Of a stretch of 64,000 bases of DNA, positions 1 through 64,000 are shown piece by piece. Under the pieces are notes generated by a model. That model made no database searches. It was not told the DNA's origin and saw only the letters and a list, made by a program, of their open reading frames with translations. Within the stretch, counting starts at the first letter, position 1; every line of letters begins with the position of its first letter. The stretch spans positions 372,001-436,000 of the forward strand of contig NIVC01000084.1 in NCBI GenBank assembly GCA_002269645.1. The letters are read 5' to 3'. The stretch comes from Macrostomum lignano (lineage: Eukaryota). The translations under genes and the position numbers were made by a program.

Positions 1-3805
<3,805 letters not shown>

Positions 3806-3834
3806 CCACTTTACCCCACCTTGCACCCGAGCAG

Positions 3835-5463
3835 ATGCACAATCAGCCAGTCAGGCTTGTGGGCCGATTCATATGAGTGCGTATGCAAGGCTGGTCACTA
3901 CTGGTCGAGAAGCACTCACGATTGCGTTCCCCAGCTGCTGTGCAACCGGCCGCGCGACTCCTCTGAGTATCCCTGTTCGCCACGATACACATTGTACTGC
4001 GAGAGTCGCGTGACCAAAGTTGGAAAGAACGGCACGGAGGCGGAAGCAGAAACTGAGACGATCTGCGTCTGTAAAGAAGGCTACGGCGGCAGTCGTTGTG
4101 AACGTCTGGCCGATCCGTGTACCGATCGGCATCCGTTTTACAGTGTGTCCGGGAACTTCGCATGCGCCACGTATGATGGTAAGTGCGTGTGAAATTTGCT
4201 TTGCCGTATTTTATTAGGCTTCGATGCGTGTGATATGACCATCGGTACATGAAGAAGCTGACACAAATATCGAACACGTGGAAACACGATTTGACGCGAA
4301 TCCTATCTGAATATGAATCCTAGTGAGACATGAATTCTATCACTTTTGAAAGCTTTCATCCATTCCTATAATGTTTCAGGCCTGGGCACTTGTCGTAGGA
4401 GCAAAACAAGTAACTCCATCCCCAATTGGGAGTGCGTCTGCTCGTTTCAACGAGCTCGGGACCTAGCTCTAGTCTACGATAACTGCGCTGCCTATAGGAA
4501 CGTGTGCCTGTCAATGAACTGCATTAATGGATATTTCATTTCGTCGAAAATTGGAAATTTATGCAAGTTCATTGCGTTTTTTTATGTTTATTAGGGTAGA
4601 AAGCAAAGATCTGACTTATGAATGGCTTGATAGAAGTGTCTCTATAGTGGGCTCAGATCATGTGTGTTCGGTGCCTGTGTCTCTGCGGTCATTAGGTATG
4701 TAATTGCACTGGGTGCTTGTGTCTCTGCGGTCATTAGGTGTGTCTTTGCACTCGGTGTCTGTGTCTCTGTGGTCATTAGATGTGTCTGGTCATTAGGTGG
4801 TCATTAGGTGTGTCTTTGCACTCGGTGCCTGTGTCTCTGTGGTCATTAGGTGTGTCTTTGCACTCGGTGTCTGTGTTTCTGCGGTCATTAGGTGTGTTTT
4901 GCACTCGGTGTCTGTGTCTCTGCGGTCATTAGGTGTGTCTTTGCACTGGGTGCCTGTGTCTCTGCGGTTATTAGATGTGTCTGGTTATTAGGTGGTCATT
5001 AGGTGGAAATATGTGCATTTCCACACCTGCTTGCTATTCAGGTCGCTGCAAATGTAACCCTGGCTACAGCGGGCCAACTTGCGCACAATGGACTGGCGTT
5101 TGGAGTCCCTGGTCGCAGTGGGACCGCTGCCGACCGGAGTGCGGCAACGCCGACGGCAACAGGCGTTCGATTTCGCTGCGCAGCTGCATCAACAAACGCG
5201 TGCTGGGCAACGCTACGCCGCACGACTTCTGCGTTGGCGAAGCGCAGCGATGGACGAATTGCGATCCGGCTGCGTGTTGGCTCGGCGGCGACCAGCCGGT
5301 GTCGAAGAGCTTCAGGCTGAGGGGGCATTTCCTGCTTTCCTCGGCTACTTTGGCCTGCGTTCTGGCTGCCGTGAGCGTTGGAGCCACGTTTTTGTTTTGC
5401 CGATATCGGGGATACAATATCGGACCGAGGCCGCCATTCGAGTCCGTTTATCAGCAGGGATGA
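3835..5463 (+). CDS. 3' exons of an EGF-like repeat + thrombospondin type-1 + single TM protein (5' end outside window)
   Basis: Exon 3835-4178 (cag|...|gtaagt) encodes [28 protein letters not shown] (EGF-like). Exon from 4380 (ttcag|) encodes GLGTC..WECVC..NC..C; its donor is uncertain. The last exon (~5042-5463) encodes [12 protein letters not shown], then [14 protein letters not shown] (TSP1 WxxWxxW), a hydrophobic segment [23 protein letters not shown] and a short tail, with stop at 5461-5463. Confidence 0.85.
4660..5000. repeat. Degenerate ~42-bp intronic minisatellite (GTCATTAGGTGTGTCTTTGCACTCGGTGTCTGTGTCTCTGCG)
   Basis: About 6-7 imperfect copies read directly. Confidence 0.85.
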
Positions 5464-5889
5464 GCGCTAGTGCTTGGTGCGTTCCAGTTTGTTCTGATTG
5501 AATCCGTGAACAATTGTACCGCAAGCTCCTACGTTGTTCAATGAAATACTTTGTCCTTACATCCTCAGTTTCGTTGTTAACGAAAAATTCAATTCCATGA
5601 TCCATTTTTGCTAGGGTTTTTTGTTCTTTACTAGAAATATGTTTCTTTACTTGTTGTACTCATAGCACAAACTAACTCATTCAATTTAGTACAAAATCGA
5701 CCACTGCCTATGACCACGCGACCTGCAGCTAAAAAATCTATTACACTATGAAGCATAGCTGTTAAAATCCTACGTTTCAAAGCAAATCTGTTAAATCATT
5801 ATTCCTACAGTTTATGAAATAATTCTATACTTAATGAACTTACTTTATTATCAGTGACTAATAAATCGATTATTTAATACATTACACAA

Positions 5890-6501
<612 letters not shown>

Positions 6502-9921: not shown

Positions 9922-22744
<12,823 letters not shown>

Positions 22745-32245: not shown

Positions 32246-32707
32246 ATGGCCAGCGAGAGTGAACAAGTTCTGAAGAAGGTGTTCGACAGCGCCGATGCTA
32301 ACGGCAACGGCACCATCGAGGCCAAGGAGCTGGTGAACCTGATCCGCGCCGCCGGGCACACCATCACCCGAGTTGAGGCCGAAGCTCTCATCAAAGAGTT
32401 CGACAAGAACGAGAACGGCACCCTGGAATTTGGCGAGTTCGTCAACATGATGAACAGCTTCCTGTCCAAGGGTGGGCACCGGCCCCAGTCCGAGAAGGAG
32501 AAGATCTTCCAGCTGCTGGACCAGAACAAGGACGGCGTGATCTCCCTGCAGGAGCTCCGGGCCGTCATGAACGACATCCTGAAGGAGGGCCTCTCCGACG
32601 AGCAGCTGCAGCAGATGCTGAACGAGGCTGACACCGACAAAGACGGTGCCATCAGCTTCGACGAGTTCAACAACATGGCTGCCAAGATGAAGATCTTCCA
32701 CGCCTGA
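32246..32707 (+). CDS. Intronless calmodulin-like protein, four canonical EF hands, 153 aa
   Basis: Loops DANGNGTIEAKE, DKNENGTLEFGE, DQNKDGVISLQE, DTDKDGAISFDE; strong GC3 codon bias. Too diverged to be canonical calmodulin. Confidence 0.95.
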   Translation: MASESEQVLKKVFDSADANGNGTIEAKELVNLIRAAGHTITRVEAEALIKEFDKNENGTLEFGEFVNMMNSFLSKGGHRPQSEKEKIFQLLDQNKDGVISLQELRAVMNDILKEGLSDEQLQQMLNEADTDKDGAISFDEFNNMAAKMKIFHA

Positions 32708-36711: not shown

Positions 36712-37293
<582 letters not shown>

Positions 37294-41727: not shown

Positions 41728-42587
41728 CAAAGAGTATTGAGGTCGCCTAGTATAGAGTGCCAATAAGGATGAAAATCTGAAGCCGATTTTTAGAATCCAC
41801 CCACCCCCTCCGGTCACCAAGCTGTTTAGTCTATGGCACAAGTTGTGGCTAGAATGGTGTACAAAGCCGATGCTCAGAAATATAAGACATTTCACACTTA
41901 GAAAATGAAATGTCTCAGACTCAGTCACCAGACTCAGTTGCCGTCGTCGATACACAACTCCGTAACAGCCATGCCATATAGCCCTTACGTCTGAACAACA
42001 AAAGCCATGCCACTAAAGTGCGCGGTAGCTAATTGCAATAACTGCGTTTCTGATGCATCTGTATCCTTCTTTCGTCTGCCTTTCAAGGACGTCGATCGTC
42101 TGAGAGAGTGGCGAGCACGGGTGCCACTAAGATCTGCTGGAGATGTCAAATGGATGCATATCATCAACCATCAGAGATATTGTAATTCGACAAGCCTATC
42201 AGGTTTTTTGCTTTTCCTACTGCTGCACCTTCACTCTGCCTGTTTATCACTTATGTTTTTTGTCTTTCCGACTCTGCTGCAAGTATCCTGCTCAACTTCT
42301 TTTCTCCTTACACAATTCAATCAATGTACGTACGGTTACAGTATAGATACAGAAATAAAGTCTTGAGGACGTTTTAAGCATACATGGTATTCGTCCAGCT
42401 ACATTAGCTACTTGTGTTTTTCTCATGTATATTTCTGAGCATCGGCTTTGGACACCATTCTAGCCACAACTTGTGCCATAGACTAAAAAGCTTGGTGACC
42501 GGATCGGGGGGTGGGTGGATTCTAAAAATCGGCTTCAGATTTTCATCCTTATTGGCACTCTATACTAGGCGACCTCAATACTCTTTG
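41728..42587 (+). mobile_element. Internally deleted P-superfamily-like DNA transposon (860 bp): ~160-bp TIRs starting CAAAGAGTATTG, perfect 8-bp TSD GCTGGATC, THAP remnant
   Basis: 41728-41884 is the reverse complement of 42428-42587. GCTGGATC occurs at 41720-41727 and 42588-42595. The internal ATG at 42007 gives MPLKCAVANC...FFRLP...W. Confidence 0.88.
42007..42200 (+). pseudogene. Truncated THAP zinc-finger coding remnant of a transposase
   Basis: C-x4-C, FFRLP and the conserved W are present. The terminal C-x2-H-F is not recognisable and the downstream ORF is low quality. Confidence 0.7.
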
Positions 42588-43968: not shown

Positions 43969-45216
<1,248 letters not shown>

Positions 45217-45598: not shown

Positions 45599-46099
45599 AT
45601 GTCCAACCAGAGCGTCACTGGGGGCGTCAGTCAGGAGATTCTACGCGAAGTGTTCGACAAATTCGATGTCGATGGCAGCGGAGCGATTGAGGCTCGCGAA
45701 CTCGTCAGGCTGATGCGGTCTGCCGGGCAGGCCCTGACCCGAGCTGAGGCCGACTCGCTAATCCGCGAGTTCGACAAGAACTCCAACGGCCGGTTGGAAT
45801 TCTCCGAGTTCGTAGCCATGATGGACGCCTTCGCCGAGAAAGCTAACGGCAAGTCGACATCGGCATCGACAGATGAAGATGTCGACGAGAGAAAGCGAAT
45901 TTTTGAGCTGCTGGACAGAAACAGGGACGGCTTCATCTCCAGGGCTGAGCTGGCTCACGTGATGAACGACCTGTTAGAGGAGGGTCTGAGCGAGCACGAC
46001 CTCGACCAGATGATGGCGGCCGCTGACACCGACGGAGACGGTCAGATCAGCTTTGAGGAGTTCAGCAGCCTGGCGGCCAGCATGAGGATCTTCCGCTAA
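45599..46099 (+). CDS. Intronless calmodulin-like protein, four EF hands, 166 aa; paralog of 32246-32707
   Basis: Loops [48 protein letters not shown]. Shares IREFDKN, VMNDLL.EGLS and M.IF motifs with the upstream copy. Confidence 0.95.
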
Positions 46100-48482: not shown

Positions 48483-49391
48483 CTACACCTTGTGCCCATT
48501 GATCTCCGTGCCGTTTCGCCTGTAGAACTCTGACTGAACGATTCCGATGCGGCAATGCGCCCGATCCGGGGGGTCCAGCTGATTCGATAGCCGCTTGCCG
48601 TATACAGACGAGTAGAGAGTCGGTACCGGCTTTGAAATTTCCTGGAAATCGTTTTCCAGGAACCGTGTTAAAACGGATCATCAACGACCAAGCCGTCAAA
48701 ATGTAATTATTTGCAGTAGTGTAAATGTTTTGAACTTATAAAGTTCACTACTAGCCGTTACAAAACATTTAAATTACCTCCTGATGCACTTGAAGGCCTT
48801 GAGACTTTGCATGCTCCCTGTCGTCTCTGTGCAGCTTGGCATTGAAATCGCGCTCCTGGTGAAAAATCCTATCGTAGCCATAGGCCGAGTAGCGTTCCTG
48901 TGGGGATGGGCGGTAAAGGCAATAGCTAGGGTGAGAGAGGAAATGTATTGAAATTTGAATCTATTTTTACTGTATACTGCGCTGCATCTATAGGTTAGTT
49001 GTAGTATTCAATTTTGCCTTTCCTTTATTTATATATCATCTATTTTCAAAGTCTCGTGGGTTTTTAAATAAAATTAAATAAGCGTTAAAAACTGACAAAA
49101 AATTTACCAACTCTATATTATTTCGTCTGTTCTAACTTTAGAGGGTTTAAGCCAGTATTACTTTAGGACAGCTGGGCATGTAAAATGCTTATATATGGTC
49201 TGGAAGCAACTTTCATACTAGTGGCAAAAACTTACATTTTTATCCACGTTGAAATATGTACGTTCCCTCGGTGCATGGCGCTCTGGAGGGACAAAAGAAA
49301 ATGAGGAAAGCTCGCAAGGGCGACCTCGCAAGACGAATTCGTCAGTATCCGTCTTTACGGGAATAACAAAATCGCTTTGCTCTTCTTCCAT
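48483..49391 (-). CDS. CFAP90: Cilia- and flagella-associated protein 90 (C5orf49) ortholog; 3 exons, 144 aa
   Basis: Exons 49391-49236, 48897-48778 and 48641-48483 (GT-AG, all phase 0). Encodes SSFSFVPPERHAPRERTYF, YDRIFHQERDFNAKLHRDDREHAKSQGLQVHQEE and LYSSVYGKR...QSEFYRRNG, which match the CFAP90 signature LHRDDREHAK / SSVYGKR / FYRKN that I recognise. Confidence 0.92.
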
Positions 49392-49796: not shown

Positions 49797-52700
49797 ATGA
49801 GCAGAAATTTTCCAACTTTGCAAGAGAAAGTTGGCAATGCTTCTTCGAGGTAATCTAATCTTCAATGTTTTTCATTTTAAGATATTCGTGTTCTCCATGT
49901 ACTAAAATGGTTTGTCGGTAGGTATCTATCTAGGTACGTGATCGACTTTACCTCTCTACTAAAGCAGCTAATTTTTAGATATATGTTCTGTTTATTTGTT
50001 GACTGCTGCTTTTAAAAGGCTCGTACATCATTTAAGAAGAATTTACATTACTAACATTGTCTAGTCATTAAGTGCAGAACATCAGAATTCAGATGGCATG
50101 TGCTAAACTAAAAACCTTATTAATATTACTTTTGGTCAACTGGTTAAAAATATAATTGTATATTAATTGTCACAAGGTAATATATGTATACATAGATTTT
50201 TTGTTTTATTAGTAATAGCTTTAATAATTGCAATAATGCTTTTATAGCATTTTGTTTAATATCTTTGTTTTAGGTTGTTATGCTATTTATCAATAACTGC
50301 CATACCTTCTTAGGAATAAAAATTACTGAAAATCAATTTTCTAACTTTTCCTCTTAAACTATGCACTTAAAACTTATTTTATAATTATCATACATTAAAC
50401 ATAGAAAACGAAATTAAAAGTTAGACATTTTGCTTTGCATGGCTATCAAAATTCAAATGAAAGAATGTCTTTGAAAAAAAGCTATTTTTGCATTCAAAAC
50501 CCAAATCAAGATCTGTGCAAGACCGCGTCAGCTCAGTGAGTCAACGAGAGGCCCAAAATGTTCTTCGACTTCGCGTCAATCGAGTCTGCCTTGTACAGCA
50601 GCTCAATGTAGATCCCGTGGTTGATTACCTGAGACGTGAAGGTATTCTCAGCGACACCGATGTTCGCTTTGTGTCCCGCGGTGCCAACAGGTCTGAGAAG
50701 ACGCGAATGCTGCTGGACATGCTGCCCAGCAAGGATCCCAGCACCCAGTGGTACAACAAGTTCAGGTGGGAATGTGAGCTGCAAGTATTGCCGAATGAAC
50801 GCCCTTCTGTTCTTCGAAGCTCTTCTGAGAATCGCCCTCGAATCTCTATTCTGAAAATCGTTCTCTAATCTCTATTCTGAAAATCGCCATCTAATCTCTA
50901 TTCTGAAAACCAGCCCCTAGATCTAATCTACACCAGAGAATGCCCCCTAGATCTAATCTACACCAGAGAATGCCCCCTAGATCTAATCTACACCAGAGAA
51001 TGCCCTCTAGATCTAATCTGCACCAGAGAATGGCCCTCTAGATCTAATCTGCACCAGAGAATGGCCCTCTAGATCTAATTTGCACCAGAGAATGGCCCTC
51101 TAGATCTAATCTGCAATAGAGAATCGCCCTCTAGATCTAATCTGCAATAGAGAATCGCCCTCTAGATCTAATCTGCACCAGAGAATCGCCCTCTAGATCT
51201 AATCTGCACCAGAGACTCGCCCTCTAGATCTAATCTGCACCAGAGAATCGCCCTCTAGATCTAATTTGCACCAGAGAATGGCCCTCTAGATCTAATCTGC
51301 AATAGAGAATCGCCCTCTAGATCTAATCTGCACTAGAGTTGCCCTCTAGATCTAATTTGCACCAGAGTTGCCCTCTAGATCTAATTTGCACTAGAGTTGC
51401 CCTCTAGATCTAATCTGCACTAGAGTTGCCCTCTAGATCTAATTTGCACTAGAGTTGCCCTCTAGATCTAATTTGCACTAGAGTTGCCCTCTAGATCTAA
51501 TCTGCACTAGAGTTGCCCTCTAGATCTAATCTGCACTAGAGTTGCCCTCTAGATCTAATTTGCACCAGAGTTTCCCTCTAGATCTAATCTGCACCAGAGT
51601 TGCCCTCTAGATCTAATTTGCACCAGAGTTGCCCTCTAGATCTAATTAGCACCAGAGTTGCCCTCTAGATCTAATTTGCACCAGAGTTGCCCTCTAGATC
51701 TAATTTGCACCAGAGTTGCCCTCTAGATCTAATCTGCACTAGAGTTGCCCTCTAGATCTAATCTGCACTAGAGTTGCCCTCTAGATCTAATCTGCACTAG
51801 AGTTGCCCTCTAGATCTAATTTGCACCAGAGTTTCCCTCTAGATCTAATCTGCACCAGAGTTGCCCTCTAGATCTAATTTGCACCAGAGTTGCCCTCTAG
51901 ATCTAATTTGCACCAGAGTTGCCCTCTAGATCTAATTTGCACCAGAGTTGCCCTCTAGATCTAATTTGCACCAGAGTTGCCCTCTAGATCTAATCTGCAC
52001 TAGAGTTGCCCTCTAGATCTAATCTGCACCAGAGTTGCCCTCTAGATCTAATTTGCACCAGAGTTGCCCTCTAGATCTAATCCACACCAGAGGAACCTCT
52101 AGAGCAAGCGATCTAGAAGCAAGTCCCGTCACCTACCCAGGACGTCTCTATCGGCAACATCCACCGTCGACGCCACCACCGCTCGGAATCATCAAATCTT
52201 GGTTGACTTTCTAGACAGCACAAATCTAGCCAATCTGAAATCGAGTTCCACAGACTCAGTGCAACACTCTGAGCAGCAGCAGCAGCCGCCGCTGCCGCCG
52301 ATTCAACCTCAAGAAGACGATCCGACGTCTGCAGAGCATCGTCAGCGTTGGAAGGCGCTACGCTCGGCGGCCAAGTCCAGACTGAGTCAGCTCGAAGCCA
52401 ATCCGTCTATTCGATTGAGTCGCCTACCGGAGGACTTGCCCGAGCACCTGGCTCGAACTTACGAAGCCTGGACAGCTAACGGCGGCAGCGGTCGCTCCGC
52501 GGCCAAGCACGAGCGTCGATGCCTGTCGCGATTGCGAACCGCCGACGACTTCGCCTTGCAAGCTGCCGGTTCAGCCAATTCCGAACGACTCATGCTGGTC
52601 TGCTTCATTTCGCCGCTGCACCGTCTGCTGTGCGACATTCGCAAGCGTCATCTGGCTTATAAATACTTACTAGCCGATGCGCCTAGCCTTGGCAACGCCT

Positions 52701-55700
52701 TAGCAACCGCGTTTGCTAACCTATCTGCCGGGCCGGACGGTCGACGACTTTTTACCGACGGTCGATGGTCGCGGTACGCGGCTACTAAGCTGGCAAATTT
52801 GGCCGGCCGACTGTTCGACTTTCTGGCCGGAGTCAATCTGTTTAGAGAGTGCGAGACGGTTGCCGGGTCTTTGTGCGACTATCTGAATAGGTGAGGCTGC
52901 TTAAGTATCTGAGCTGTCTGAAGTAAAACTTGTTTCACACGTTGGTGTAACTCTCGGCGATCTAGTGACAAAATAATTCCATCACAACATCCGATGATAC
53001 AGGTATTGGCTTAGCTCAGGAGTCACTGGAATAATGTCGCCGAAGATGTACGTTAAGCCATGTTCATACATTCGCAATCCCCCCGATGTACATCGGCCGT
53101 GCAACTTACCTATGAAAGAAACCTAAGCAAAAATTAACAAAATTTTGGGTAAACGGCAGGAGTAACTATAGCTTGATTATTAAGGCTAAATGTCTCGGCA
53201 CCTAATTAGTGCTATGTCTATTTTGGGTTGGCATTTTTGTCACTTACCTTGGCTAAGCCCTTCGCCAGGGCGTTGCACATGTATGGCCATGTTGCCATAT
53301 TTATTACATCCATGTGACACACAAAGCCACCGACGTACGACGTACAAGCGACTGTATACAACCCTCACTAATCTCCTTGAAAAGGTTCGGCGGCGACTGC
53401 GTGGAAGCCCTGCTGCCAACCTACCGCGCCAGCGTCAGGCTGATGGAAGCCCGGCTCAACAACGCCGACTACCAGCTGGCCGACGCTGCCAGTCAGGCGG
53501 CCCAGGCCACGGCGGCCAGAATCAACCGCTTGTCATTTGGCCAAAAAGTGATGGACAACCAGGCCCTGTTGCAGGCACAGATTGGTCGGATGCTGCTGGA
53601 CCAGGGTAGCCTGGCGTCCGCGTTGGGTGCTTTTGGTAGCGCCATCTCGGTGAGTGCATGCTAATTTGTTTTTAGAAGTTTTTAGAATATGCAAGCATAA
53701 GAATATTAATTTTGATTAATTATTTGCCAAGTGCCGGCCGTCTGCGGGAGGCCTGCAGAGTTTTAATTCCTACTCTTTACAACTCATTCTTAGTCTAATA
53801 ATTAAACAAATTATAGAATATAGTTTTCTTTTATTAAACAAGAGTCATTATTAATTGTTTTACTTATAGTTTTAAATGGTAAAATAAATGATCAATAACT
53901 TTATTAAATATTTAGTTATAATATATTTTTCCTACGTTTTTAAGTATTAAAAAATAAATAATTATACAAAAAAGTAAGTAAAAATTTAAATCAAAAAGAC
54001 TTATTAAATTAAAATTATGGTAATTATACATAAATTGCGTTGTCTCTTGAGCAAATATAGAAAAGATTTCTTTTATACTTGGAAAATTTAATAAAATATC
54101 AATTTCAGACTGTGGACCTTAATGATACAGAGGCCGTATTCAAAATTCTCTACCACGCTTTGCAACTTTACCTAACAAACTCCGATGAAGGAAAAGCCGA
54201 AAAATTAGCTGTTGCTTGCGTTCAGCATGCTTAGTAAGTACTTTTTTGTAATTTCCATACCCGCCTTATTTAATAGTAACATAAATTTAAATTTATTATT
54301 ATTTCAGCAAATTTTACAAAACAGAATCGCCGGAATACATCAAGTCGTTGTTGAACTTTGTCAAATTTTCAAACGCCTTCTGTCAAGATGATTTTGGAGT
54401 CGAAGTTGCTGTGGTAAGTTTGGCCACGGGTGTGCAAAGTGTCATTTTCTACAGTTTAGAAATATTTCAACAACATTCTTAGAAAACTATATTGTCTCAT
54501 TTGTATGAAAATCGAATTTTATTTCTACTGTATCGAAATACGATGTCTTTCTAAAAAAACAAACCGAAGTCATAGAAAATTTTGTTTTTATGCAATATTT
54601 ACTGTGGTGTAATTTTTTTAGCTTTTTAGTAAGTAATTCGGTAATTCTTAAGTATCTCGTGATTTAAGAACCATGTAAGTATCTTAAAACAGTCCAATGC
54701 AAATTTTGAATACGAATCAATTTGATACTGTGGCGCCCTTCGTTCGAGAAACTTTAATTAACCGTATATTAATCTAACATTCTATAAATCATGCACAAAT
54801 CCAAATGTCGCGATCTTTGCAGAAGTTTATCTTCACCTAATAATATTCTACGAGCTAGTTTCAAACATTTATTAATGAATACTAAATTATGTACTATATG
54901 AAAACAGCATAGTAAATATCTGTGTAATTATCGATAAATTATCAGCACGTTGAATTTGTTATACTGTAGGAATTAATATTTTTAGAACTTTCTCGAAAAC
55001 CAAGTCATATCTATAAATATACGGCAGGCGCATCGTCATTTCTTCATCTTCCCCATTTTCTTTATTCGTTCCTAATACACCAATAAACAAAGGAACCACT
55101 GATTTCATTTGCTGACGAATGCTAACATCAATCCAACTAATTCCGCCAATGTCGTTCTGTTCTAACAAAATATAATTTTTAGATTACACCTAATTCTTAG
55201 AAAATATCGCATCAGCTAAAAAACTTCGTTCTTTTCGTAAAAATTGGATCTCATTCTATAGGAAACTTATTCTCTCTTTCTAGGAAAAATCAATTCCGGT
55301 TCTAAGGCTAATTCTCACCTCATTCTTATAAAACTTGATAAATTTCCTATCCATCAAATTCCAGAACGCGTCTTTATTCGCTCAGCTCATCCTGGGCTAC
55401 CAGCACCCGCTACTAGCCGAAGTCCAGTCGCACCTGTCGTTGGCGCAGCTTCTACGGCTCCGTCATCGCAGCCGCCGCGGTCAGGGTGCAACTGCGGAGC
55501 CCCAAGAAGTTGTCGCTCACGTGGAAGCTTCTCTAGCCGCAGTCAGAATGAGCTCTGGCGAGTCGGCATCTCAGCATCCCAACGCTGCCTCCTTGATGAC
55601 TAATCTAACCCAAGCTGCTCGCCTAGCGAACCCCGCCATCCTGCCAGTTGAACTGCTTCAAGTCGCCATCGAATTCGGTAGAAAATCTGTTGAAATTTTC

Positions 55701-58700
55701 TCGAATACCATCGGTCGGCACAGTCCGGCAGCTGTGCAAGCCAGAATCTGTCTGGGCAGGCTTCTGGCCGATGTGCCTTCGGGGGAGTACCGTCCGGAGG
55801 CTGAGCAGCTGGCTGATGAAGCTCTAGAAGCGCTGATTGACAGCCAACCAGCTCAAGGGCACCTGCTGCTCAGAGCTAAACTCCAGTTGGCTAAGTAGGC
55901 CATTTTTTAGTCTGTCAGATTTTTTATTCTGAGATTTTTAGTCTGAAATATTTGAGTCTGAGGTTTTGAGTCTGTGGGATTTTGAGCTGTGAGATTTTGA
56001 GTCTGTGAGATTTTGAGTCTGTGAGATTTTGAGTCTGAGATGTTAAGTCTGGGATTTGGATAATGAGATTTTGAGTCTGTGAGATTTTGAGTCTGGGTGA
56101 TTTTGAGTCTGAGATGTTAAGTCTGGGATTTGGATACTGAGATTTTGAGTCTGTGAGATTTTGAATCTGGGAGATTTTGAATCTATGAGATTTTGAATCT
56201 GGGAGAGTTTGAGTCTGGGATTTTGAATCTGTGAGATTTTGAATCTGTGAGATTTTGAATCTGGGTGATTTTTAGTCTCTGAGATTTGAGCCTTTGAGAT
56301 TTTGAATCTGAGAGATGTTGAATCTATGAGATTTTGAATCTGGGAGAGTTTGAGTCTGGGATTTTGAGTATGAGATTTTGAATCTGGGAGAGTTTGAGTC
56401 TGGGATTTTGAATCTGTGAGATTTTGAATCTGGGAGAGTTTGAGTCTGGGATTTTGAATCTGTGAGATTTTGAATCTGGGAGAGTTTGAGTCTGGGATTT
56501 TGAATCTATGAGATTTTGAATCTGGGAGAGTTTGAGTCTGGGATTTTGAATCTGTGAGATTTTGAATCTGTGAGATTTTGAATCTGTGAGATTTTGAATC
56601 TGTGAGATTTTGAATCTGTGAGATTTTGAATCTGAGAGATGTTGAATCTATGAGATTTTGAATCTGGGAGAGTTTGAGTCTGGGATTTTGAGTATGAGAT
56701 TTTGAATCTCGGAGATTTTGAATCTGGGAGAGTTTGAGTCTGGGATTTTGAGTATGAGATTTTGAGTCTGTCAAATTCTGAGTCTGGGATTTTGAGTCTG
56801 GTTGATTTCGAATCTATGATATTTTGAGTCTGATATTTTGAGTCTGCTAGTCACTGCATGAGTCTGTCAATTTTAATTGTTTAACTCGGCTATTAGATCA
56901 ACATTTGGTAAACTTGGGTCATCTAATTGAGATTCAATAATTTAAATACTTTTTTCATCTCTAAAGGCTGCACCGAGCCGCCGGCAATCCCAAACGAGCC
57001 CTTGCCCTGGCCAATGACGTCATCGAACAGACTGAATGCTACGGCTCTTATATTCGATGGCTAGACCAGGCCTACATTCTCGCTATTGAGTTGGTAAGCG
57101 AGTCCAAAGACTTGGCTGAAGCTGCTGCTGCAACGACGACAAGCGATGAGATGACGGCTAAACGGCAAGATTGGCTGAGCAGGCATCCGATGTCGCGGTC
57201 TGCTCAGGGCCTGGATTGGGCCACTTTGCACGATCGACCCGACAAAGAGTTCTTTCGGCGATTCCGGGCCTGGGGCGACGACAGGAAGGAACTGGTGAGG
57301 CAGGTCGCTGCCGCCGCAGCCGCTGCCGCTGCCACCACGGCAGATGGTCAGGGAGCTGAAGGCAGCAAAACTGAGTGAGTTTGAGCGCGCTCTAAACAGC
57401 TCTACCCTGGTCTGATTCTGTTAGAATGTGTTTTCACTCTGTGAATCAAGGTGTCTAGTTTGGTTAAGAACGTGTCTAGCTCGGTTGAGAACGTGTCTAG
57501 TTCGGTTAAGAACGTGTCTAGTTCGGTTAAGAACGTGTCTAGTTCGGTTAAGAACGTGTCTAGTTCGGTTAAGAACGTGTCTGGTTCGGTTAAGAACGTG
57601 TCTGGTTCGGTTAAGAACGTGTCTAGTTCGGTTAAGAACGTGTCTGGTTCGGTTAAGAACGTGTCTGGTTCGGTTAAGAACGTGTCTGGTTCGGTTAAGA
57701 ACGTGTCTAGTTCGGTTAAGAACGTGTCTGGTTCGGTTAAGAACGTGTCTAGTTCGGTTAAGAACGTGTCTGGTTCGGTTAAGAACGTGTCTGGTTCGGT
57801 TAAGAACGTGTCTAGTTCGGTTAAGAACGTGTCTGGTTCGGTTAAGAACGTGTCTAGTTCGGTTAAGAACGTGTCTAGTTCGGTTAAGAACGTGTCTAGT
57901 TCGGTTAAGAACGTGTCTAGTTCGGTTAAAAACGTGTCTAGTTCGGTTAAAAACGTGTCTAGTTCGGTTAAGAACGTGTCTAGTTCGGTTAAGAACGTGT
58001 CTAATTCGTTTAAGAACGTGTCTGGTTAAAAACTCACTTTACCAGAACTCACTTTGAACATTCTTTTCAGACAAAATAAAGCCAAAGCAGCTCAAAACCC
58101 AGAGTCCAGAACTGCTGTTGACGGATCCGAGACGGCAGCTGAAGCAAAACAGCAACGCGTGATAAAATGTGCGATTTCTTTCAGTTTAAATTAAGAATAT
58201 TTGTCCTTAAAAGGCTTTTTATATTAAGAAATCATCTTGTTTATCTTTAATTCCACAGTGCTGCTCATAGGCGATTCCGGAGTCGGGAAATCCTGCATGT
58301 TGCGCAGATTTGCTGAAAACTCATTTGACGAAAGTCAAAACGCGACGCCAACAATTGGTGTGGACTTCAAAATTGTTCAAAATGAAATCGATGGGTTAAG
58401 CATCAAGTGCCAGATCTGGGACACCGCTGGACAAGAGAGGTGATTCCTTGCATTTTTACTTGTGCGCACTTGCCTCTGATAAACCCCGAATCTCTACCCC
58501 CTAATGTACACTTATCTCTTACCTACCCCATTCAATCTCTACCCCTCCAAATGTACAATTGTCTCTTATCGACCCATTCAATCTCTACCCCTTCCAAATG
58601 TACACTTGTCTCTTATCAACTCATTCAATCTCTACCCCTTCCAAATGTACACTTGTCTGACCAACCCCATTCAATCTCTACCCCCTAATGTACACTTGCC

Positions 58701-61700
58701 TCTGACTTCAACAAAACTCCAGATTCCGCACGATAACATCATCCTACTATCGAGGCTGCGCCGGCGCTCTGCTGGTCTTCGACGCCTCGAACCGCGACAG
58801 CTTCGACAGCTGCGAGCGCTGGCTGCAGGAGCTGCGGGCCTCCGCGCCAGAGTCCGTGCACGTGGTTCTGGTGGCCAACAAGAGCGACTCGGATGAGGCC
58901 GCCGTGACTCAGGAGGAGGCGGCCGAGTTCGCCAAGTCGCACGGCATCGAGCTGTGCTGGGGCGTCAGCGCCCGCACCGGACAGAATGTCGGCCAGGCAT
59001 TCAGGGGCCTGCAGAGTCGGGTGCTGCAGAGCAAAGTTGATGGGTTAGTTATTGAACTACCGAAAGTTTCAAAATAGAAAGCATAGCAACACTATAGTCT
59101 CGCATAGCAACACGCTAGTCTCGCATGGCAACACGATACTCTCGCATGGTAACCAAGAACTTAGAGTTTCGCCTTCCCACAGACTGAGTTCAAATCAGGC
59201 TCCAATGAATTCAACTGACATGCGACAATTGCCTCAGTTGGTGCCTAAGAAAAGTGAAAATTCTAACGAACATATTGATTATCAGATAAAAGGTAAGCAG
59301 GATTGAACTTTTTTATTGTAGAAGGTAAAAATAAAGAATTATTGTATTACGCTCATTCAATTTATCATTCAGTTCTTCTAATTGGCGACTCCGGTGTTGG
59401 AAAGTCCAGCTTGCTTCAGCGATTTGCAGACAAAGAATTTGATGCCACTAACGAAATGCAACAAACCATTGGAGTGGAATTTCGAGCTGTGAAAGACAAT
59501 ATTGATGGCTGTCGAGTCAAGAGTGTGTTCTGGGACACAGCTGGTGCGGAGAGGTAAGTTTGAGATGGAATTACGCTAGCCTGAGAAGGCTTATATGCTA
59601 GACAGAGGCCTCACACCTGTTAGACTGGGGCTTCACACTTGTTAGACAGAGGCCTCACACCTATTAGACTGGGGCTTCACACTTGTTAGACAGAGGCCTC
59701 ACACCTGTTAGACTGGAGCTTCACACTTGTTAGACAGAGGCCTCACACCTGTTAGACTGGGGCTTTAATCTGTTAGACAGAGGCCTCACACCTGTTAGAC
59801 AGAGGCCTCACACCTGTTAGACAGAGGCCTCACACCTGTTAGACAGAGGCCTCACACCTGTTAGACAGAGGCCTCACACCTGTTAGACAGAGGACTCACA
59901 CCTGTTAGACAGAGGCCTCACACCTGTTAGACAGAGGCCTCACACCTGTTAGACAGAGGCCTCACACCTGTTAGACTGGGGCTTCACACCTGTTAGACAG
60001 AGACACCTGTTAGACTGGGGCCAAACCCTTCCATAAATTACCCGAAATCCGCAGGTTCCGCTCCATCACGAGCGCCTACTACCGAGGCTGCGCCGGCGCT
60101 CTGCTGGTCTTTGACGCCTCGAACCGCGACAGCTTCGACAGCTGCGAGCGCTGGCTGCAGGAGCTGCGGGCCTCCGCGCCAGAGTCCGTGCCCGTGGCTC
60201 TGGTGGCCAACAAGAGCGACTCGGATGAGGCCGCCGTGACTCAGGAGGAGGCGGCCGAGTTCGCCAAGTCGCACGGCGTCGAGCTGTGCTGGGGGGTCAG
60301 CGCCCGCACCGGACAGAATGTCGGCCAGGCATTCAGGGGCCTGCAGAGTCGGGTGCTGCAGAGCCAGAGCCAGCAATTCGGGTTGGTATTTGGCCTTCGC
60401 AACAGCATTTCATCCATTTAGCTATACATTCTCATCGTCATAGCAACACAACGTCATCCACATAGCAACACAACTTCGTCCCATGGCAACACAATCTCAA
60501 GCACATAGCAACACGATTTCATCCCCATAGCAACACAACTTCATCCCCATAACAACGCAAATATTTTCTCTTTAAAACCGATTCCTAGTTTGGCACAGAC
60601 CCAGCAGTCAAACGAATCGGCTACTTTCGCTCCGAAGGCCATCAATACGAGTAAATCTACTGAGCAGTCGAAGGAGTCTCCCATTTCGAAGCCAGCAGCA
60701 GTGGGACAGGCAAACCTGAACGATGATCGCTCTCCTGACTATGTGATAAAAAGTGAGATATAGCATCCTTGTCTTTACCATCTGACTGTTACGTGGGTGC
60801 GAAGTGAGATGGATATGCGGAGTGAGCTGGGTGCGGAGTGCGGCGGGTGTGGAGTGAGGTGGGTGTGGAGTGAGGTGGGTGTGGAGTGAGCTGGGTGCGG
60901 AGTGCGGCGGGTGTGGAGTGAGGTGGGTGTGGAGTGAGCTGGGTGCGGAGTGCGGCGGGTGTGGAGTGAGGTGGGCGCGGGGTGAGGTGGGTGCGGAGTG
61001 AGGTGGGTGCGGAGTGAGGTGGGTGCGGAGTGAGGTGGGCGTGAAGTGGGGTGTGTGTGGAGTGAGGTGGGTGTGGAGTGAGGTGGGTGTGGAGTGAGGT
61101 GGGTGTGGAGTGAGGTGGATGTGGAGTGAGCTGGGTGCGGAGTGCAGTGGGTGTGGAGTGAGGTGGGTGTGGAGTGAGCTGGGTGCGGAGTGCGGCGGTT
61201 GTGGAGTGAGGTGGGCGCGGGGTGAGGTGGGTGCGGAGTGAGGTGGGTGCGGAGTGAGGTGGGTGCGGAGTGAGGTGGGCGTGAAGTGGGGTGGGTGGAG
61301 TGAGGTGGGTGTGGAGTGAGCTGGGTGCGGAGTGCGGCGGGTGTGGAGTGAGGTGGGCGCGGGGTGAGGTGGGTGCGGAGTGAGGTGGGTGCGGAGTGAG
61401 GTGGGTGCGGAGTGAGGTGGGCGTGAAGTGGGGTGTGTGTGGAGTGAGGTGGGTGTGGAGTGAGGTGGGTGTGTAGTGAGGTGGGTGCGGAATGAGGTGA
61501 GTGCGGAGTGAGGTGGGTGCGGAGTGGAGTGAGGTTCGGAGGTGGGTGCAGAGTGAGGTGGGTGTGAGAATGCTCACAATGCCCACACCCACACGCAGCG
61601 GTGCTAATCGGAGACTCCGGCGTCGGCAAGTCCTGCCTGGTCCGCCAATTTATTGACCAGGAATTTGACGAGAGCCTCAAGGCAACGCCCACCATCGGAG

Positions 61701-64000
61701 TGGACTTTCGCGTGGTGAACAGCGACATTGACGGGTCGCGAGTGAAAACTCAGATTTGGGATACGGCAGGACAACAGAGGTGAGGTTGAAGTTGGATAGC
61801 TCGCTCTTTCCTTTATTAACTTTATTTTTGGACGAAATTGTGTTATAAAACCCATTAGATTTACACATAAGTTACTATCATTAACTCATTAGACAGCAAG
61901 GACCTTAACACCTGGATCATAATAACTGAATCATGAATCTAGGCTCATAAACCTATATTAAAACACCGGAATCATGACACTCAAATTATAAATCTTGGAT
62001 CATAATTATCTGAATCATAACACCTGGATCATTACACCTGGATTATAACACCTGGATTATAACACCTGGATTATAACACCTGGATCATAACACCTGGATT
62101 ATAACACCTGGATTATAACACCTGGATTATAACACCTGGATCGTACCACCTGGATCATAACACCCGGATCATAACACCCGGATTAGAACACCTGGATCAT
62201 AACACCTGGACCATAATACCTGAATCATAACACCTGGATCATAAAACTTAAACCATAACACCCCTTAGACCGCCCTTCGCCCCTCCCCGACATCCGCAGG
62301 TTCCGCTCCATCACGAGCGCCTACTACCGAGGCTGCGCCGGCGCTCTGCTGGTCTTCGACGCCTTGAACCGCGACAGCTTCGACAGCTGCGAGCGCTGGC
62401 TGCAGGAGCTGCGGGCCTCCGCGCCAGAGTCCACGCCCGTGGCTCTGGTGGCCAACAAGAGCGACTCGGATGAGGCCGCCGTGACTCAGGAGGAGGCGGC
62501 CGAGTTCGCCAAGTCGCACGGCGTCGAGCTGTGCTGGGGGTCAGCGCCCGCACCGGACAGAATGTCGGCCAGGCATTCAGGGGCCTGCAGAGTCGGGTGC
62601 TGCAGAGCCAGAGCCAGCAATTCGGGTTGGTATTTGGCCTTCGCAACAGCATTTCATCCATTTAGCTATACATTCTCATCGTCATAGCAACACAACGTCA
62701 TCCACATAGCAACACAACTTCGTCCCCATGGCAACACAATCTCAAGCACATAGCAACACGATTTCATCCCCATAGCAACACAACTTCATCCCCATAACAA
62801 CGCAAATATTTTCTCTTTAAAACCGATTCCTAGTTTGGCACAGACCCAGCAGTCAAACGAATCGGCTACTTTCGCTCCGAAGGCCATCAATACGAGTAAA
62901 TCTACTGAGCAGTCGAAGGAGTCTCCCATTTCGAAGCCAGCAGCAGTGGGACAGGCAAACCTGAACGATGATCGCTCTCCTGACTATGTGATAAAAAGTG
63001 AGATATAGCATCCTTGTCTTTACCATCTGACTGTTACGTGGGTGCGAAGTGAGATGGATATGCGGAGTGAGCTGGGTGCGGAGTGCGGCGGGTGTGGAGT
63101 GAGGTGGGTGTGGAGTGAGGTGGGTGTGGAGTGAGCTGGGTGCGGAGTGCGGCGGGTGTGGAGTGAGGTGGGTGTGGAGTGAGCTGGGTGCGGAGTGCGG
63201 CGGGTGTGGAGTGAGGTGGGCGCGGGGTGAGGTGGGTGCGGAGTGAGGTGGGTGCGGAGTGAGGTGGGTGCGGAGTGAGGTGGGCGTGAAGTGGGGTGTG
63301 TGTGGAGTGAGGTGGGTGTGGAGTGAGGTGGGTGTGGAGTGAGGTGGGTGTGGAGTGAGGTGGATGTGGAGTGAGCTGGGTGCGGAGTGCAGTGGGTGTG
63401 GAGTGAGGTGGGTGTGGAGTGAGCTGGGTGCGGAGTGCGGCGGTTGTGGAGTGAGGTGGGCGCGGGGTGAGGTGGGTGCGGAGTGAGGTGGGTGCGGAGT
63501 GAGGTGGGTGCGGAGTGAGGTGGGCGTGAAGTGGGGTGGGTGGAGTGAGGTGGGTGTGGAGTGAGCTGGGTGCGGAGTGCGGCGGGTGTGGAGTGAGGTG
63601 GGCGCGGGGTGAGGTGGGTGCGGAGTGAGGTGGGTGCGGAGTGAGGTGGGTGCGGAGTGAGGTGGGCGTGAAGTGGGGTGTGTGTGGAGTGAGGTGGGTG
63701 TGGAGTGAGGTGGGTGTGTAGTGAGGTGGGTGCGGAATGAGGTGAGTGCGGAGTGAGGTGGGTGCGGAGTGGAGTGAGGTTCGGAGGTGGGTGCAGAGTG
63801 AGGTGGGTGTGAGAATGCTCACAATGCCCACACCCACACGCAGCGGTGCTAATCGGAGACTCCGGCGTCGGCAAGTCCTGCCTGGTCCGCCAATTTATTG
63901 ACCAGGAATTTGACGAGAGCCTCAAGGCAACGCCCACCATCGGAGTGGACTTTCGCGTGGTGAACAGCGACATTGACGGGTCGCGAGTGAAAACTCAGAT
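49797..64000 (+). CDS. CARD - helical/TPR-like - tandem multi-Rab GTPase protein (at least 4 Rab domains; runs off the window; 1-bp frameshift at ~62540)
   Basis: Exons 49797-49849, 50511-50765 (CARD), ~52117-52890, 53385-53649, 54109-54233, 54308-54413, 55365-55894, 56967-57374, 58071-58168, 58259-58439, 58723-59043, 59183-59292, 59373-59553, 60055-60381, 60589-60752, 61599-61779, 62300-62625, 62834-62997, 63844-end. Every junction is GT-AG and phase-matched through 61779. The first ATG exon and the 52117 acceptor are less certain. Confidence 0.8.
50511..50765 (+). other. CARD (death-fold) domain exon
   Basis: [35 protein letters not shown]...[15 protein letters not shown]...WYNKF follows the CARD pattern (L..NR..LV..L.V..V.DYL....IL....; R..K.R.LLD.LP.K). 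Confidence 0.85.
50910..52085. repeat. ~29-31-bp intronic minisatellite (CCCTCTAGATCTAATTTGCACCAGAGTTG)
   Basis: About 39 copies. Confidence 0.96.
55930..56850. repeat. Degenerate 15-16-bp-based intronic repeat (GAGATTTTGAATCTG[T/G])
   Basis: Direct reading. Confidence 0.92.
57452..58027. repeat. 21-bp minisatellite (AAGAACGTGTCTAGTTCGGTT) in the intron joining the TPR and Rab regions
   Basis: About 27 copies. Confidence 0.97.
58259..59043 (+). other. Rab domain 1 (exon A 58259-58439, exon B 58723-59043)
   Basis: [49 protein letters not shown]. Confidence 0.95.
58490..58700. repeat. ~46-bp intronic minisatellite (TACACTTGTCTCTT..CCCATTCAATCTCTACCCC..AAATG)
   Basis: About 5 copies. Confidence 0.85.
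59373..60381 (+). other. Rab domain 2 (exon A 59373-59553, exon B 60055-60381)
   Basis: DYQIK|[46 protein letters not shown]. Confidence 0.95.
59590..60020. repeat. 22-bp intronic minisatellite (CACCTGTTAGACAGAGGCCTCA)
   Basis: Direct reading. Confidence 0.93.
60790..61565. repeat. 16-bp G-rich intronic minisatellite (GGTGGGTGCGGAGTGA)
   Basis: Direct reading; duplicated at 63035-63810. Confidence 0.95.
61599..62625 (+). other. Rab domain 3 (exon A 61599-61779, exon B 62300-62625 with a 1-bp deletion)
   Basis: DYVIK|[32 protein letters not shown]. The G-run at ~62536-62540 has 5 G versus 6 G in domain 2. Confidence 0.9.
61905..62250. repeat. 14-bp intronic minisatellite (CCTGGATTATAACA)
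   Basis: Direct reading. Confidence 0.9.
63035..63810. repeat. Second copy of the G-rich 16-bp intronic minisatellite
   Basis: Apparently identical to 60790-61565. Confidence 0.95.
63844..64000 (+). other. Rab domain 4, exon A (truncated by the window end)
   Basis: cag|CGGTGCTAATCGGAGACTCC..., identical to 61599 onward. Confidence 0.92.

Follow-up and report, generated by a model that had tools for sequence, protein, structure and literature searches.

In the 64,000-nt window studied here (the whole stretch from position 372,001 to 436,000 of contig NIVC01000084.1 of Macrostomum lignano, assembly GCA_002269645.1), the region 58071-64000 is the 3′ part of a gene that encodes, in this order, a CARD domain, a helical region of about 700 aa and a chain of Rab-like domains. 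We propose that the last assembled unit of this chain was probably gained through a recent unequal crossover between the exons that complete domains 3 and 2, which would have added a second copy of two exons, and that the cores of the exons involved have been kept alike by gene conversion. Each Rab unit consists of three exons, named here L (linker), A and B and numbered by domain; their positions, together with those of the other features of the gene, are given in Table 1. For comparison, we used two sister loci of the same assembly, L001 and L002, which are the loci of the annotated product P0001 (BOX15_Mlig018981g1, "CARD domain-containing protein") and of a second annotated M. lignano product, P0002, respectively.

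An earlier note on this DNA had described the last two modules of the array as a near-identical tandem repeat of 2245 bp. The alignment of 60041-61755 with 62286-64000 bore this out: its 1716 columns contain 5 substitutions and two 1-nt indels, which corresponds to 99.6% identity, and the period is 2245 (2244 between the indels). The tandem repeat is real, but its unit is offset from the modules: it starts 14 nt 5′ of a B exon and has the order B-L-A instead of L-A-B. All the substitutions between the two copies fall within the first 149 nt, and the four exonic ones are all located 5′ of a G run in the B exon. From 60190 on, not one substitution occurs in 1566 nt, a stretch that takes in two introns and a 772-nt minisatellite; two changes in homopolymer length are the only differences. 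When the nine B exons of the three loci were aligned, B3 of the window turned out to be a hybrid. Its upstream intron (the 14-mer array) and its TCCACGCCC (S-T-P) signature are of the B3 type, while its 3′ end (QSQSQQFG) and its downstream intron are of the B2 type. The colinearity with L002 also switches inside this exon, given that 60909-62595 corresponds to L002 19471-21112 and 62286-63686 to L002 18696-20114. B3 is a junction element carrying the flanks of two parental repeats, as unequal recombination would leave it; since the orthologue of its 5′ flank borders the third B exon of the sister loci and that of its 3′ flank their second B exon, these results support the idea of a crossover.

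The comparison of the paralogous exons indicated how such an exchange could have been facilitated. The A exons of the array share 62-67% nucleotide identity, with a synonymous divergence (dS) above 1.9 or undefined, whereas the cores of the B exons (exon nucleotides ~23-310) are 90-99% identical, with dS values of 0.05-0.13, about as low as between gene copies (0.09); for codons 8-98 of B1 and B2, dS is 0.047. The ends of the B exons (~22 nt on the 5′ side and ~15 nt on the 3′ side) have diverged as much as the A exons. The GC content is 65-69% in the B exons and 46-57% in the A exons. Purifying selection was ruled out as the source of the likeness between the B cores, because the similarity extends to synonymous sites. 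Judged by the dS contrast, the presence of low-dS paralogous tracts within anciently diverged flanks points to concerted evolution by gene conversion, with the tract confined inside one exon. The A and L exons of domains 1-3, in turn, are anciently divergent as judged by their saturated dS. The note's view that domains 1-3 have diverged is therefore correct for the A exons, the linkers and the intronic minisatellites, but not for the B exons, and old and young modules are not simply piled up in the array: the A halves are ancient and the B halves conversion-homogenized.

In the sequence of events that we propose, an ancestral three-exon Rab unit would have given rise to each Rab domain of the array. 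Gene conversion would have kept the B cores near-identical, so that these direct repeats of ~290 nt, which are 95-99% identical inside the window and lie 1.3-2.2 kb apart, could serve as a recombination substrate. An unequal crossover between the B exon of domain 3 and that of domain 2, occurring in the lineage of the window's gene copy, with the point of exchange inside the G run at 62532 or immediately 5′ of it, would have added another L3-A3 unit and given rise to the hybrid B3. The mechanism itself is not new, since the duplication of symmetric-phase exon units and unequal crossover between homogenized repeats are textbook processes.

The anatomy of the modules is compatible with such an insertion. 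The L exon includes the tail of the preceding domain and the (D)YxIK start of strand beta-1, the A exon extends from the P-loop to DTAGQE, and the B exon encodes the remainder of the domain; AG acceptors and GT donors are present throughout. The exon coordinates confirmed that the three complete A exons measure 181 nt with phase 1-2 boundaries and that the linkers are phase 2-1. The B exons, all of which had been considered phase 2-2, have these boundaries in B1 and B2, but not in B3 as assembled, which has 326 instead of 327 nt. In the same way, the lengths of the modules (600, 618 and 672 nt) are multiples of 3, as expected if whole modules can be duplicated without breaking the frame, but the extra unit was assembled at 671 nt. 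With phase-2 introns on both sides and a length divisible by 3, the unit is a symmetric-phase exon module, so that modules could be added or removed in frame. Judged from its exons, the module is a complete three-exon Rab unit, whose tail has been turned into the linker to the next unit.

The domains encoded by these modules belong to the Ras superfamily (Pfam Ras family, 2.9e-140 over three stretches), and each of them has the G1-G5 motifs (GDSGVGKS, the T in TIGV(D/E)F, DTAG(Q/A)(E/Q), NKSD and SAR). Motifs of the Rab family (IGVDF, RFRxIT and the YYRGA-like set) are legible directly in the sequence. The solved structures closest to domain 1 are Rab1A/B (2e-47), followed by Rab35, Rab8 and Rab10, and all the top matches in the structure search, carried out with domain 1 and with the fourth domain of the sister loci (4′, described below), were Rabs and not Ras, Rho or Arf. 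In domain 2, DTAGAE replaces DTAGQE in all three gene copies (window 59534-59551; L001 ~18361; L002 ~17643); lacking the catalytic Gln, this domain probably hydrolyzes GTP slowly.

Both sister loci contain L1-A1-B1, L2-A2-B2 and L3-A3-B3 with orthologous introns and minisatellites, and each has a single L3-A3. Their third B exon diverges from B2 after nucleotide 297 and continues without an intron through 87 linker codons, and the next exon, joined to this B3-linker exon in phase 1, has 175 nt and carries the P-loop (IVVGNAGVGKS...DTAGQE). In the resulting domain 4′ an intron occupies the same position between A and B, and the terminal exon ends in SSSSAESAE followed by the stop. This domain matches the Pfam Ras family at 1.2e-35 and is closest to Rab11 (1.5e-26). 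The sister open reading frame (ORF) ends in SSLSSSSSAESAE and the stop codon after a polybasic stretch, with no terminal Cys. A final CC, CXC or CAAX motif, which the earlier note had proposed to look for, is thus lacking from the sister-locus tails, and the window stops before the C-terminus. Four Rab domains are the reference state. Within the window there are at least four, the fourth being cut by its end, and the window copy would have five if its continuation resembles the sister loci. Beyond the window, we expect the rest of A4, the 14-mer intron and an unrearranged B3 fused to the long linker, and further on a divergent Rab11-like domain of the fourth type with a non-prenylated acidic/serine tail. 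The minisatellite introns vary in length among the three loci (501, 1047 and 344 nt for the A2-B2 intron). We also observed that the G-rich 16-mer of the L3-A3 intron, GTGGGTGCGGAGTGAG, resembles a 17-mer, GGGAGTGAGGTGGGTGC, of the sister A4′-B4′ intron (L002 ~21790-22580), so related arrays occupy different introns of the array.

To place the duplication in time, we considered how the copies of the region relate to each other. M. lignano is a hidden tetraploid (PMC5704211). An intronless ORF for an EF-hand (calmodulin-like) protein at 32246-32707 (153 aa) is found with exact coding sequence on four contigs of GCA_002269645.1, which indicates four copies of the region; one of these contigs, NIVC01000084.1 (1.12 Mb), matches the window at 100% over 20,462 nt. 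In the surroundings of this gene, the other three contigs are 98.6-99.3% identical to one another, and the window contig is ~94% identical to them; over the Rab-array gene itself, the window contig is 94-96% identical to the sister contigs, NIVC01003072.1 and NIVC01000483.1. Since it differs from both sister contigs by ~4-6% substitutions, while these differ from each other by 1-3%, the window copy is probably a diverged duplicate of the locus and not an allele, and probably corresponds to the other subgenome of the hidden tetraploid. The copies of the tandem repeat are near-identical although minisatellite introns vary widely and the divergence between contigs is ~5%; on these counts, the duplication must be much younger than the split from the sister contigs, at under ~1/25 of that divergence (95% confidence). 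We rejected the opposite scenario, in which the sister loci lost a unit and the window made no gain, given that 0 substitutions in 1566 nt contrast with the 4-6% to the sisters. A very recent gain of one unit in one gene copy is thus the probable event. Regarding the suggestions that the array is still expanding and that its copy number may vary between individuals or haplotypes, the last unit is indeed a very recent duplicate next to sister loci with a single L3-A3, and the number of modules does differ between assembled copies. Nevertheless, the extra unit is out of frame as assembled, which leaves expansion at the protein level unproven, and the comparison is not one of individuals and, at 4-6% divergence, probably not one of alleles.

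Several observations weigh against the proposed crossover, or against a functional product of it, and they have to be considered together with the alternatives that they favor. At two sites of its 5′ part (alignment columns 46 and 53), B3 resembles B2 and not the sister third B exon, making the exact parental sequence of this lineage uncertain; copy 2 of the repeat ends at the window edge, with its distal junction lying outside; and the frame of the added unit is disrupted as assembled. The quality of the draft is a further concern. The Mlig_3_7 assembly was built from PacBio continuous long reads (CLR) with Canu, using default parameters except errorRate, and polished with Pilon; 64% of its bases are error-free by REAPR, 872 coverage errors were detected within contigs, and the assembly is highly redundant, in a genome of which 15% consists of simple or tandem repeats (PMC5730564). 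In sequence present in up to four near-identical copies, such a draft could contain a false tandem duplication created by the assembler or polisher at the near-identical B exons, or two units could exist everywhere, with the sister contigs collapsed; either way, the copies would not truly differ in their number of modules. The identity of both units, hypervariable minisatellite included, the location of a homopolymer indel at the switch point, and the homopolymer or short indels in other exons of these contigs would all agree with an artefact. We nevertheless regard it as unlikely, though worth serious attention. B2 and B3 share a stretch of only ~311 nt, which is shorter than the default minimum overlap of Canu (500 nt), and reads of several kb would cover the 2.2-kb unit. 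The window is free of Ns and gaps, the paralogue-specific substitutions of the hybrid exon are clean and found on one side only, as a real crossover gives, and the two homopolymer differences between the copies suggest that an independent consensus was obtained for each of them. A different possibility is that the L3-A3 duplication is older, has been held identical by gene conversion, and is missing from the sister copies through loss or because they never had it. Conversion clearly operates in the array, but elsewhere its tracts measure ~290 nt and end inside the B exon, whereas here at least 1566 nt are free of substitutions across introns and minisatellite alike; with the unit absent from both sister loci as well, this explanation is hardly credible.

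The duplication could also be real but dead. According to this idea, the downstream Rab units, above all the new one, would be decaying after polyploidization, the frameshift would be genuine, the protein of 1503 aa would end in an incomplete third domain, and the array would be eroding. Features that truncate the ORF after domain 1-3 do occur in all three gene copies (window, L001 and L002): the G6-to-G5 loss of B3 is also found in B1 of L002, where the annotated P0002 terminates in the shifted frame, L002 has in addition a 4-nt deletion in A3, and L001 carries an insertion that is described below. Moreover, P0001 and P0002 hold one Rab domain only, the ratio of nonsynonymous to synonymous divergence (dN/dS, window vs. 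L001) is ~1 for A1 and A3 considered alone, and with four copies of the region a relaxed constraint on each would be expected. In contrast, the disrupting changes differ from copy to copy and three of the four are short indels; both 1-nt losses lie within the G6 run, as uncorrected CLR errors in multi-copy sequence would; no substitution-type stop codon was found in the L, A or B exons of the three loci; in all loci the linkers have kept their lengths (98, 110 and 164 nt) and an open frame; none of the domains has lost a G1-G5 motif; and with the array pooled, dN/dS for the window vs. L001 is 0.36, a value that comes from 59 differences only. Taken together, these data make a dead array improbable. 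The G-run loss in B3 is somewhat better explained as a homopolymer error of the PacBio draft than as biology, because indels of this kind commonly persist in CLR assemblies where the sequence is multi-copy and out of reach of short-read polishing; in the case of an error, the window copy encodes five Rab domains, compared with four in the sister copies. Finally, the Rab units might be separate genes in a tight, possibly trans-spliced cluster, in which the compatibility of phases would be fortuitous. Many M. lignano mRNAs are trans-spliced (PMC5730564), L2 contains in-frame ATGs, reading through the unspliced donors of B1 and B2 leads to a stop after 11-13 codons, and none of the accessible annotated products spans two Rab domains or includes domain 2 onward. 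However, both annotated products match the splices E8-L1-A1-B1, with domain 1 fused to the CARD/helical part, and in P0001 the B1 donor is joined to an acceptor of the L2 type. Each of the three linkers is open solely in the frame set by splicing, a pattern matched by 0.085% of shuffles (p ~0.001), and the linkers between domains contain no C-terminal cysteine motifs and no Cys; in the sister loci, no intron separates the third B exon from the linker that follows it. A cluster of separate genes is therefore highly improbable, and a single multi-Rab ORF is well supported by the splices of P0001 and P0002, by linkers that are open in one frame only, and by the fused B3 and linker of the sister loci.

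The end of P0001 has an explanation of its own. An insertion of ~300 nt (L001 17708-18009) is located exactly at the L2 acceptor of this locus, flanked by a 7-nt duplication (CACAGAT). It supplies a stop codon and an AATAAA, and P0001 ends inside it for this reason. The L001 copy may thus produce mainly a one-Rab isoform.

With P0001 and P0002, the best protein matches of the spliced Rab region, as guides, we obtained a gene model with 19 exons inside the window and GT-AG introns throughout; the gene continues past the window end. The spliced translation of the upstream part (49797-57374, plus strand) is 98% identical to P0001 and P0002 across 808 aa. Exon E2 matches the Pfam CARD domain (1.1e-9, 38.6 bits vs. 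a cut-off of 23.9), while for the region of ~700 aa the only match was TPR_12 at 2.4e-4, under its cut-off. An AlphaFold2 model of P0001 made on a two-sequence alignment had a mean predicted local distance difference test (pLDDT) score of 42.5 and was used for secondary structure only; residues 29-822 are all-helical in it. A word-index search with the N-terminal part returned no relatives beyond P0001 and P0002 of M. lignano. An exhaustive HMMER search with exon 3 recovered one more protein (P0169, 39% identity), the sole distant homologue, which has the same CARD-plus-helical organization and matches CARD at 1.4e-8.

Table 1. Features of the CARD and Rab-chain gene in the window (positions of the window; minisatellites according to Tandem Repeats Finder)
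Feature	Position	Strand	Remark
E1	49797-49849	+	holds ATG
E2	50511-50765	+	CARD
E3	52141-52890	+	helical region
E4	53385-53649	+	helical region
E5	54109-54233	+	helical region
E6	54308-54413	+	helical region
E7	55365-55894	+	helical region
E8	56967-57374	+	enters L1 in phase 2
L1	58071-58168, 98 nt	+	module 1 linker, phase 2-1
A1	58259-58439, 181 nt	+	module 1, phase 1-2
B1	58723-59043, 321 nt	+	module 1, phase 2-2
L2	59183-59292, 110 nt	+	module 2 linker, phase 2-1
A2	59373-59553, 181 nt	+	module 2, phase 1-2
B2	60055-60381, 327 nt	+	module 2, phase 2-2
L3	60589-60752, 164 nt	+	module 3 linker, phase 2-1
A3	61599-61779, 181 nt	+	module 3, phase 1-2
B3	62300-62625, 326 nt	+	module 3, hybrid exon
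L4	62834-62997, 164 nt	+	duplicated unit; identical to L3
A4	63844-64000, cut at window end	+	duplicated unit; identical to A3 across 157 nt
Tandem repeat copy 1	60041-62285	+	14 nt of intron, B2, intron, L3, 16-mer intron, A3, 14-mer intron
Tandem repeat copy 2	62286-64000	+	incomplete, 1715/2245 nt inside window
Homogenized B1 core	58745-59032, exon nt ~23-310	+	blastn of B1 21-310 vs. B2/B3, identity matrix
Homogenized B2 core	~60077-60364	+	blastn vs. B1
Homogenized B3 core	~62322-62608	+	blastn vs. B1
G5 run	62532-62536	+	copy 1 has G6 at 60286-60291; 1-nt loss shifts B3 frame
TGA stop	62962-62964	+	in L4, shifted frame; ORF as assembled 1503 codons
47-mer minisatellite	58489-58703		A1-B1 intron
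22-mer minisatellite	59599-60002		A2-B2 intron
16-mer minisatellite GTGGGTGCGGAGTGAG, 48.4 copies	60793-61564		L3-A3 intron
14-mer minisatellite	61906-62262		A3-B3 intron
16-mer minisatellite, identical array	63038-63809		L4-A4 intron; equal length and score

The rest of the window is rich in repeats. A (TCTG)n microsatellite of ~950 copies (3.8 kb) occupies its start (1-3804), (GATA/AGAT/ATCT)n arrays of 0.3-1.2 kb are found at 5890-6501, 10741-11417, 12490-12772, 36712-37293 and 43969-45216, and nearly every intron and intergenic stretch has its own minisatellite according to Tandem Repeats Finder. Among the neighboring coding sequences is a second intronless EF-hand (calmodulin-like) ORF at 45599-46099 (166 aa), which is absent from the record as a called gene. 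A three-exon homologue of CFAP90 lies on the minus strand at ~48641-49391. Compared with the L001 copy, the frame of its final exon is shifted by 1 nt in a homopolymer, which again suggests either indel errors left in the draft or the decay of duplicates. The ORF 42007-42366 has an N-terminal THAP zinc-finger match barely over the cut-off (Pfam, 5.6e-5) and may be a domesticated or decaying transposase fragment. At ~3800-5500 and ~10140-10440 we detected ORF fragments resembling EGF/thrombospondin-type cysteine-rich repeats, together with a fragment upstream that looks like FERM; the annotation of a sister contig has a FERM_C gene at the corresponding place. The ORF 4975-5463 gave zero Pfam matches, and on the minus strand of the 58-64 kb region we found no credible gene, only stop-free reading through minisatellites.

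It is unusual for a protein to combine a CARD, a helical region restricted to the lineage and a series of four or five complete Rab domains, and to have no lipid anchor. It is also unusual that one exon of each domain is anciently diverged and the other homogenized, with conversion building its own recombination substrate inside a coding array, and that a duplication should be caught near zero age in a neopolyploid genome. Given that there is no lipid anchor and that the CARD is at the opposite end, our guess is that the protein acts as a cytosolic CARD-linked adaptor or scaffold, whose interactions would be gated by several GTP switches. Full-text literature searches for phrases on tandem or multiple Rab domains and on CARD plus Rab returned nothing relevant, with no paper on this protein or on tandem-Rab predictions. 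More tentatively, the gene might represent an undescribed class of cytosolic, non-prenylated "Rab-chain" proteins, with a CARD and four to five switches, in which the N-terminal half-domains (P-loop, switch I and interswitch) have diversified, the C-terminal halves are held identical by conversion limited to the exon, and the number of domains is thereby evolvable through unequal crossover and already differs between duplicate copies in one neopolyploid genome. If reads and complementary DNA confirm the extra unit, the gene would offer a compact natural case for the evolution of domain number and for a chain of Rab switches on a death-fold adaptor. Should the extra unit prove to be an error of the assembly, we are left with a gene for a fixed set of four Rabs whose half-domains evolve in concert, an architecture that is still undescribed but of modest interest.

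In our protein search, tandem-Rab proteins were predicted in rotifers, Stentor and others. One example, a Rotaria socialis "unnamed protein product" of 991 aa (P0003), has several complete Rab-like domains with DYLxK-type strand starts, linkers of 25-60 aa, and no cysteine tails between or after the domains, as in the array. Its identity, however, is only 38%, and it has no CARD or helical N-terminal region, and is a gene prediction only. If the proposed class is real, the rotifer predictions would make the Rab chain a wider, overlooked architecture. As a genetic system, the array resembles kringle IV type 2 of human LPA, in which in-frame exon modules vary in copy number as a result of unequal recombination: in both, one domain is encoded by a multi-exon unit that has equal intron phases on its two sides and is repeated head-to-tail, and near-identical repeats permit unequal crossovers by which whole domains are gained or lost in frame. 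The two differ in that here only a 290-nt part of one exon is homogenized, the other half-domain being anciently diverged; in that one extra unit is seen, in one assembled copy of one genome; and in that the domain is a GTPase and not a kringle. As a protein, it can be compared with the large Rab GTPases (CRACR2A/Rab46, Rab44 and Rab45/RASEF), which have a single Rab, an N-terminus with EF-hands and a coiled coil and, mostly, a prenylated tail. They too are long multidomain proteins in which interaction domains come first and the Rab is C-terminal, but the protein studied here has four to five Rabs, a CARD at its N-terminus and, in the sister loci, no prenylation motif. Death-fold scaffolds such as DAPK1 and other ROCO proteins (Roc plus COR, death domain), Apaf-1 and the NLRC proteins (CARD, STAND NTPase and repeats) likewise unite in one polypeptide a death-fold adaptor, one or more nucleotide switches and a helical-repeat region. 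Our protein differs from them in having true Rab-family GTPases, several in a row and at the C-terminal end, with no COR, NACHT or NB-ARC in Pfam; without a COR match it does not qualify as a ROCO protein, and its Roc matches (4.2e-97) merely shadow the stronger ones to the Ras family. By analogy, the likeness to these scaffolds suggests that the CARD and the chain of Rab switches could take part in the nucleotide-controlled assembly of a signaling complex.

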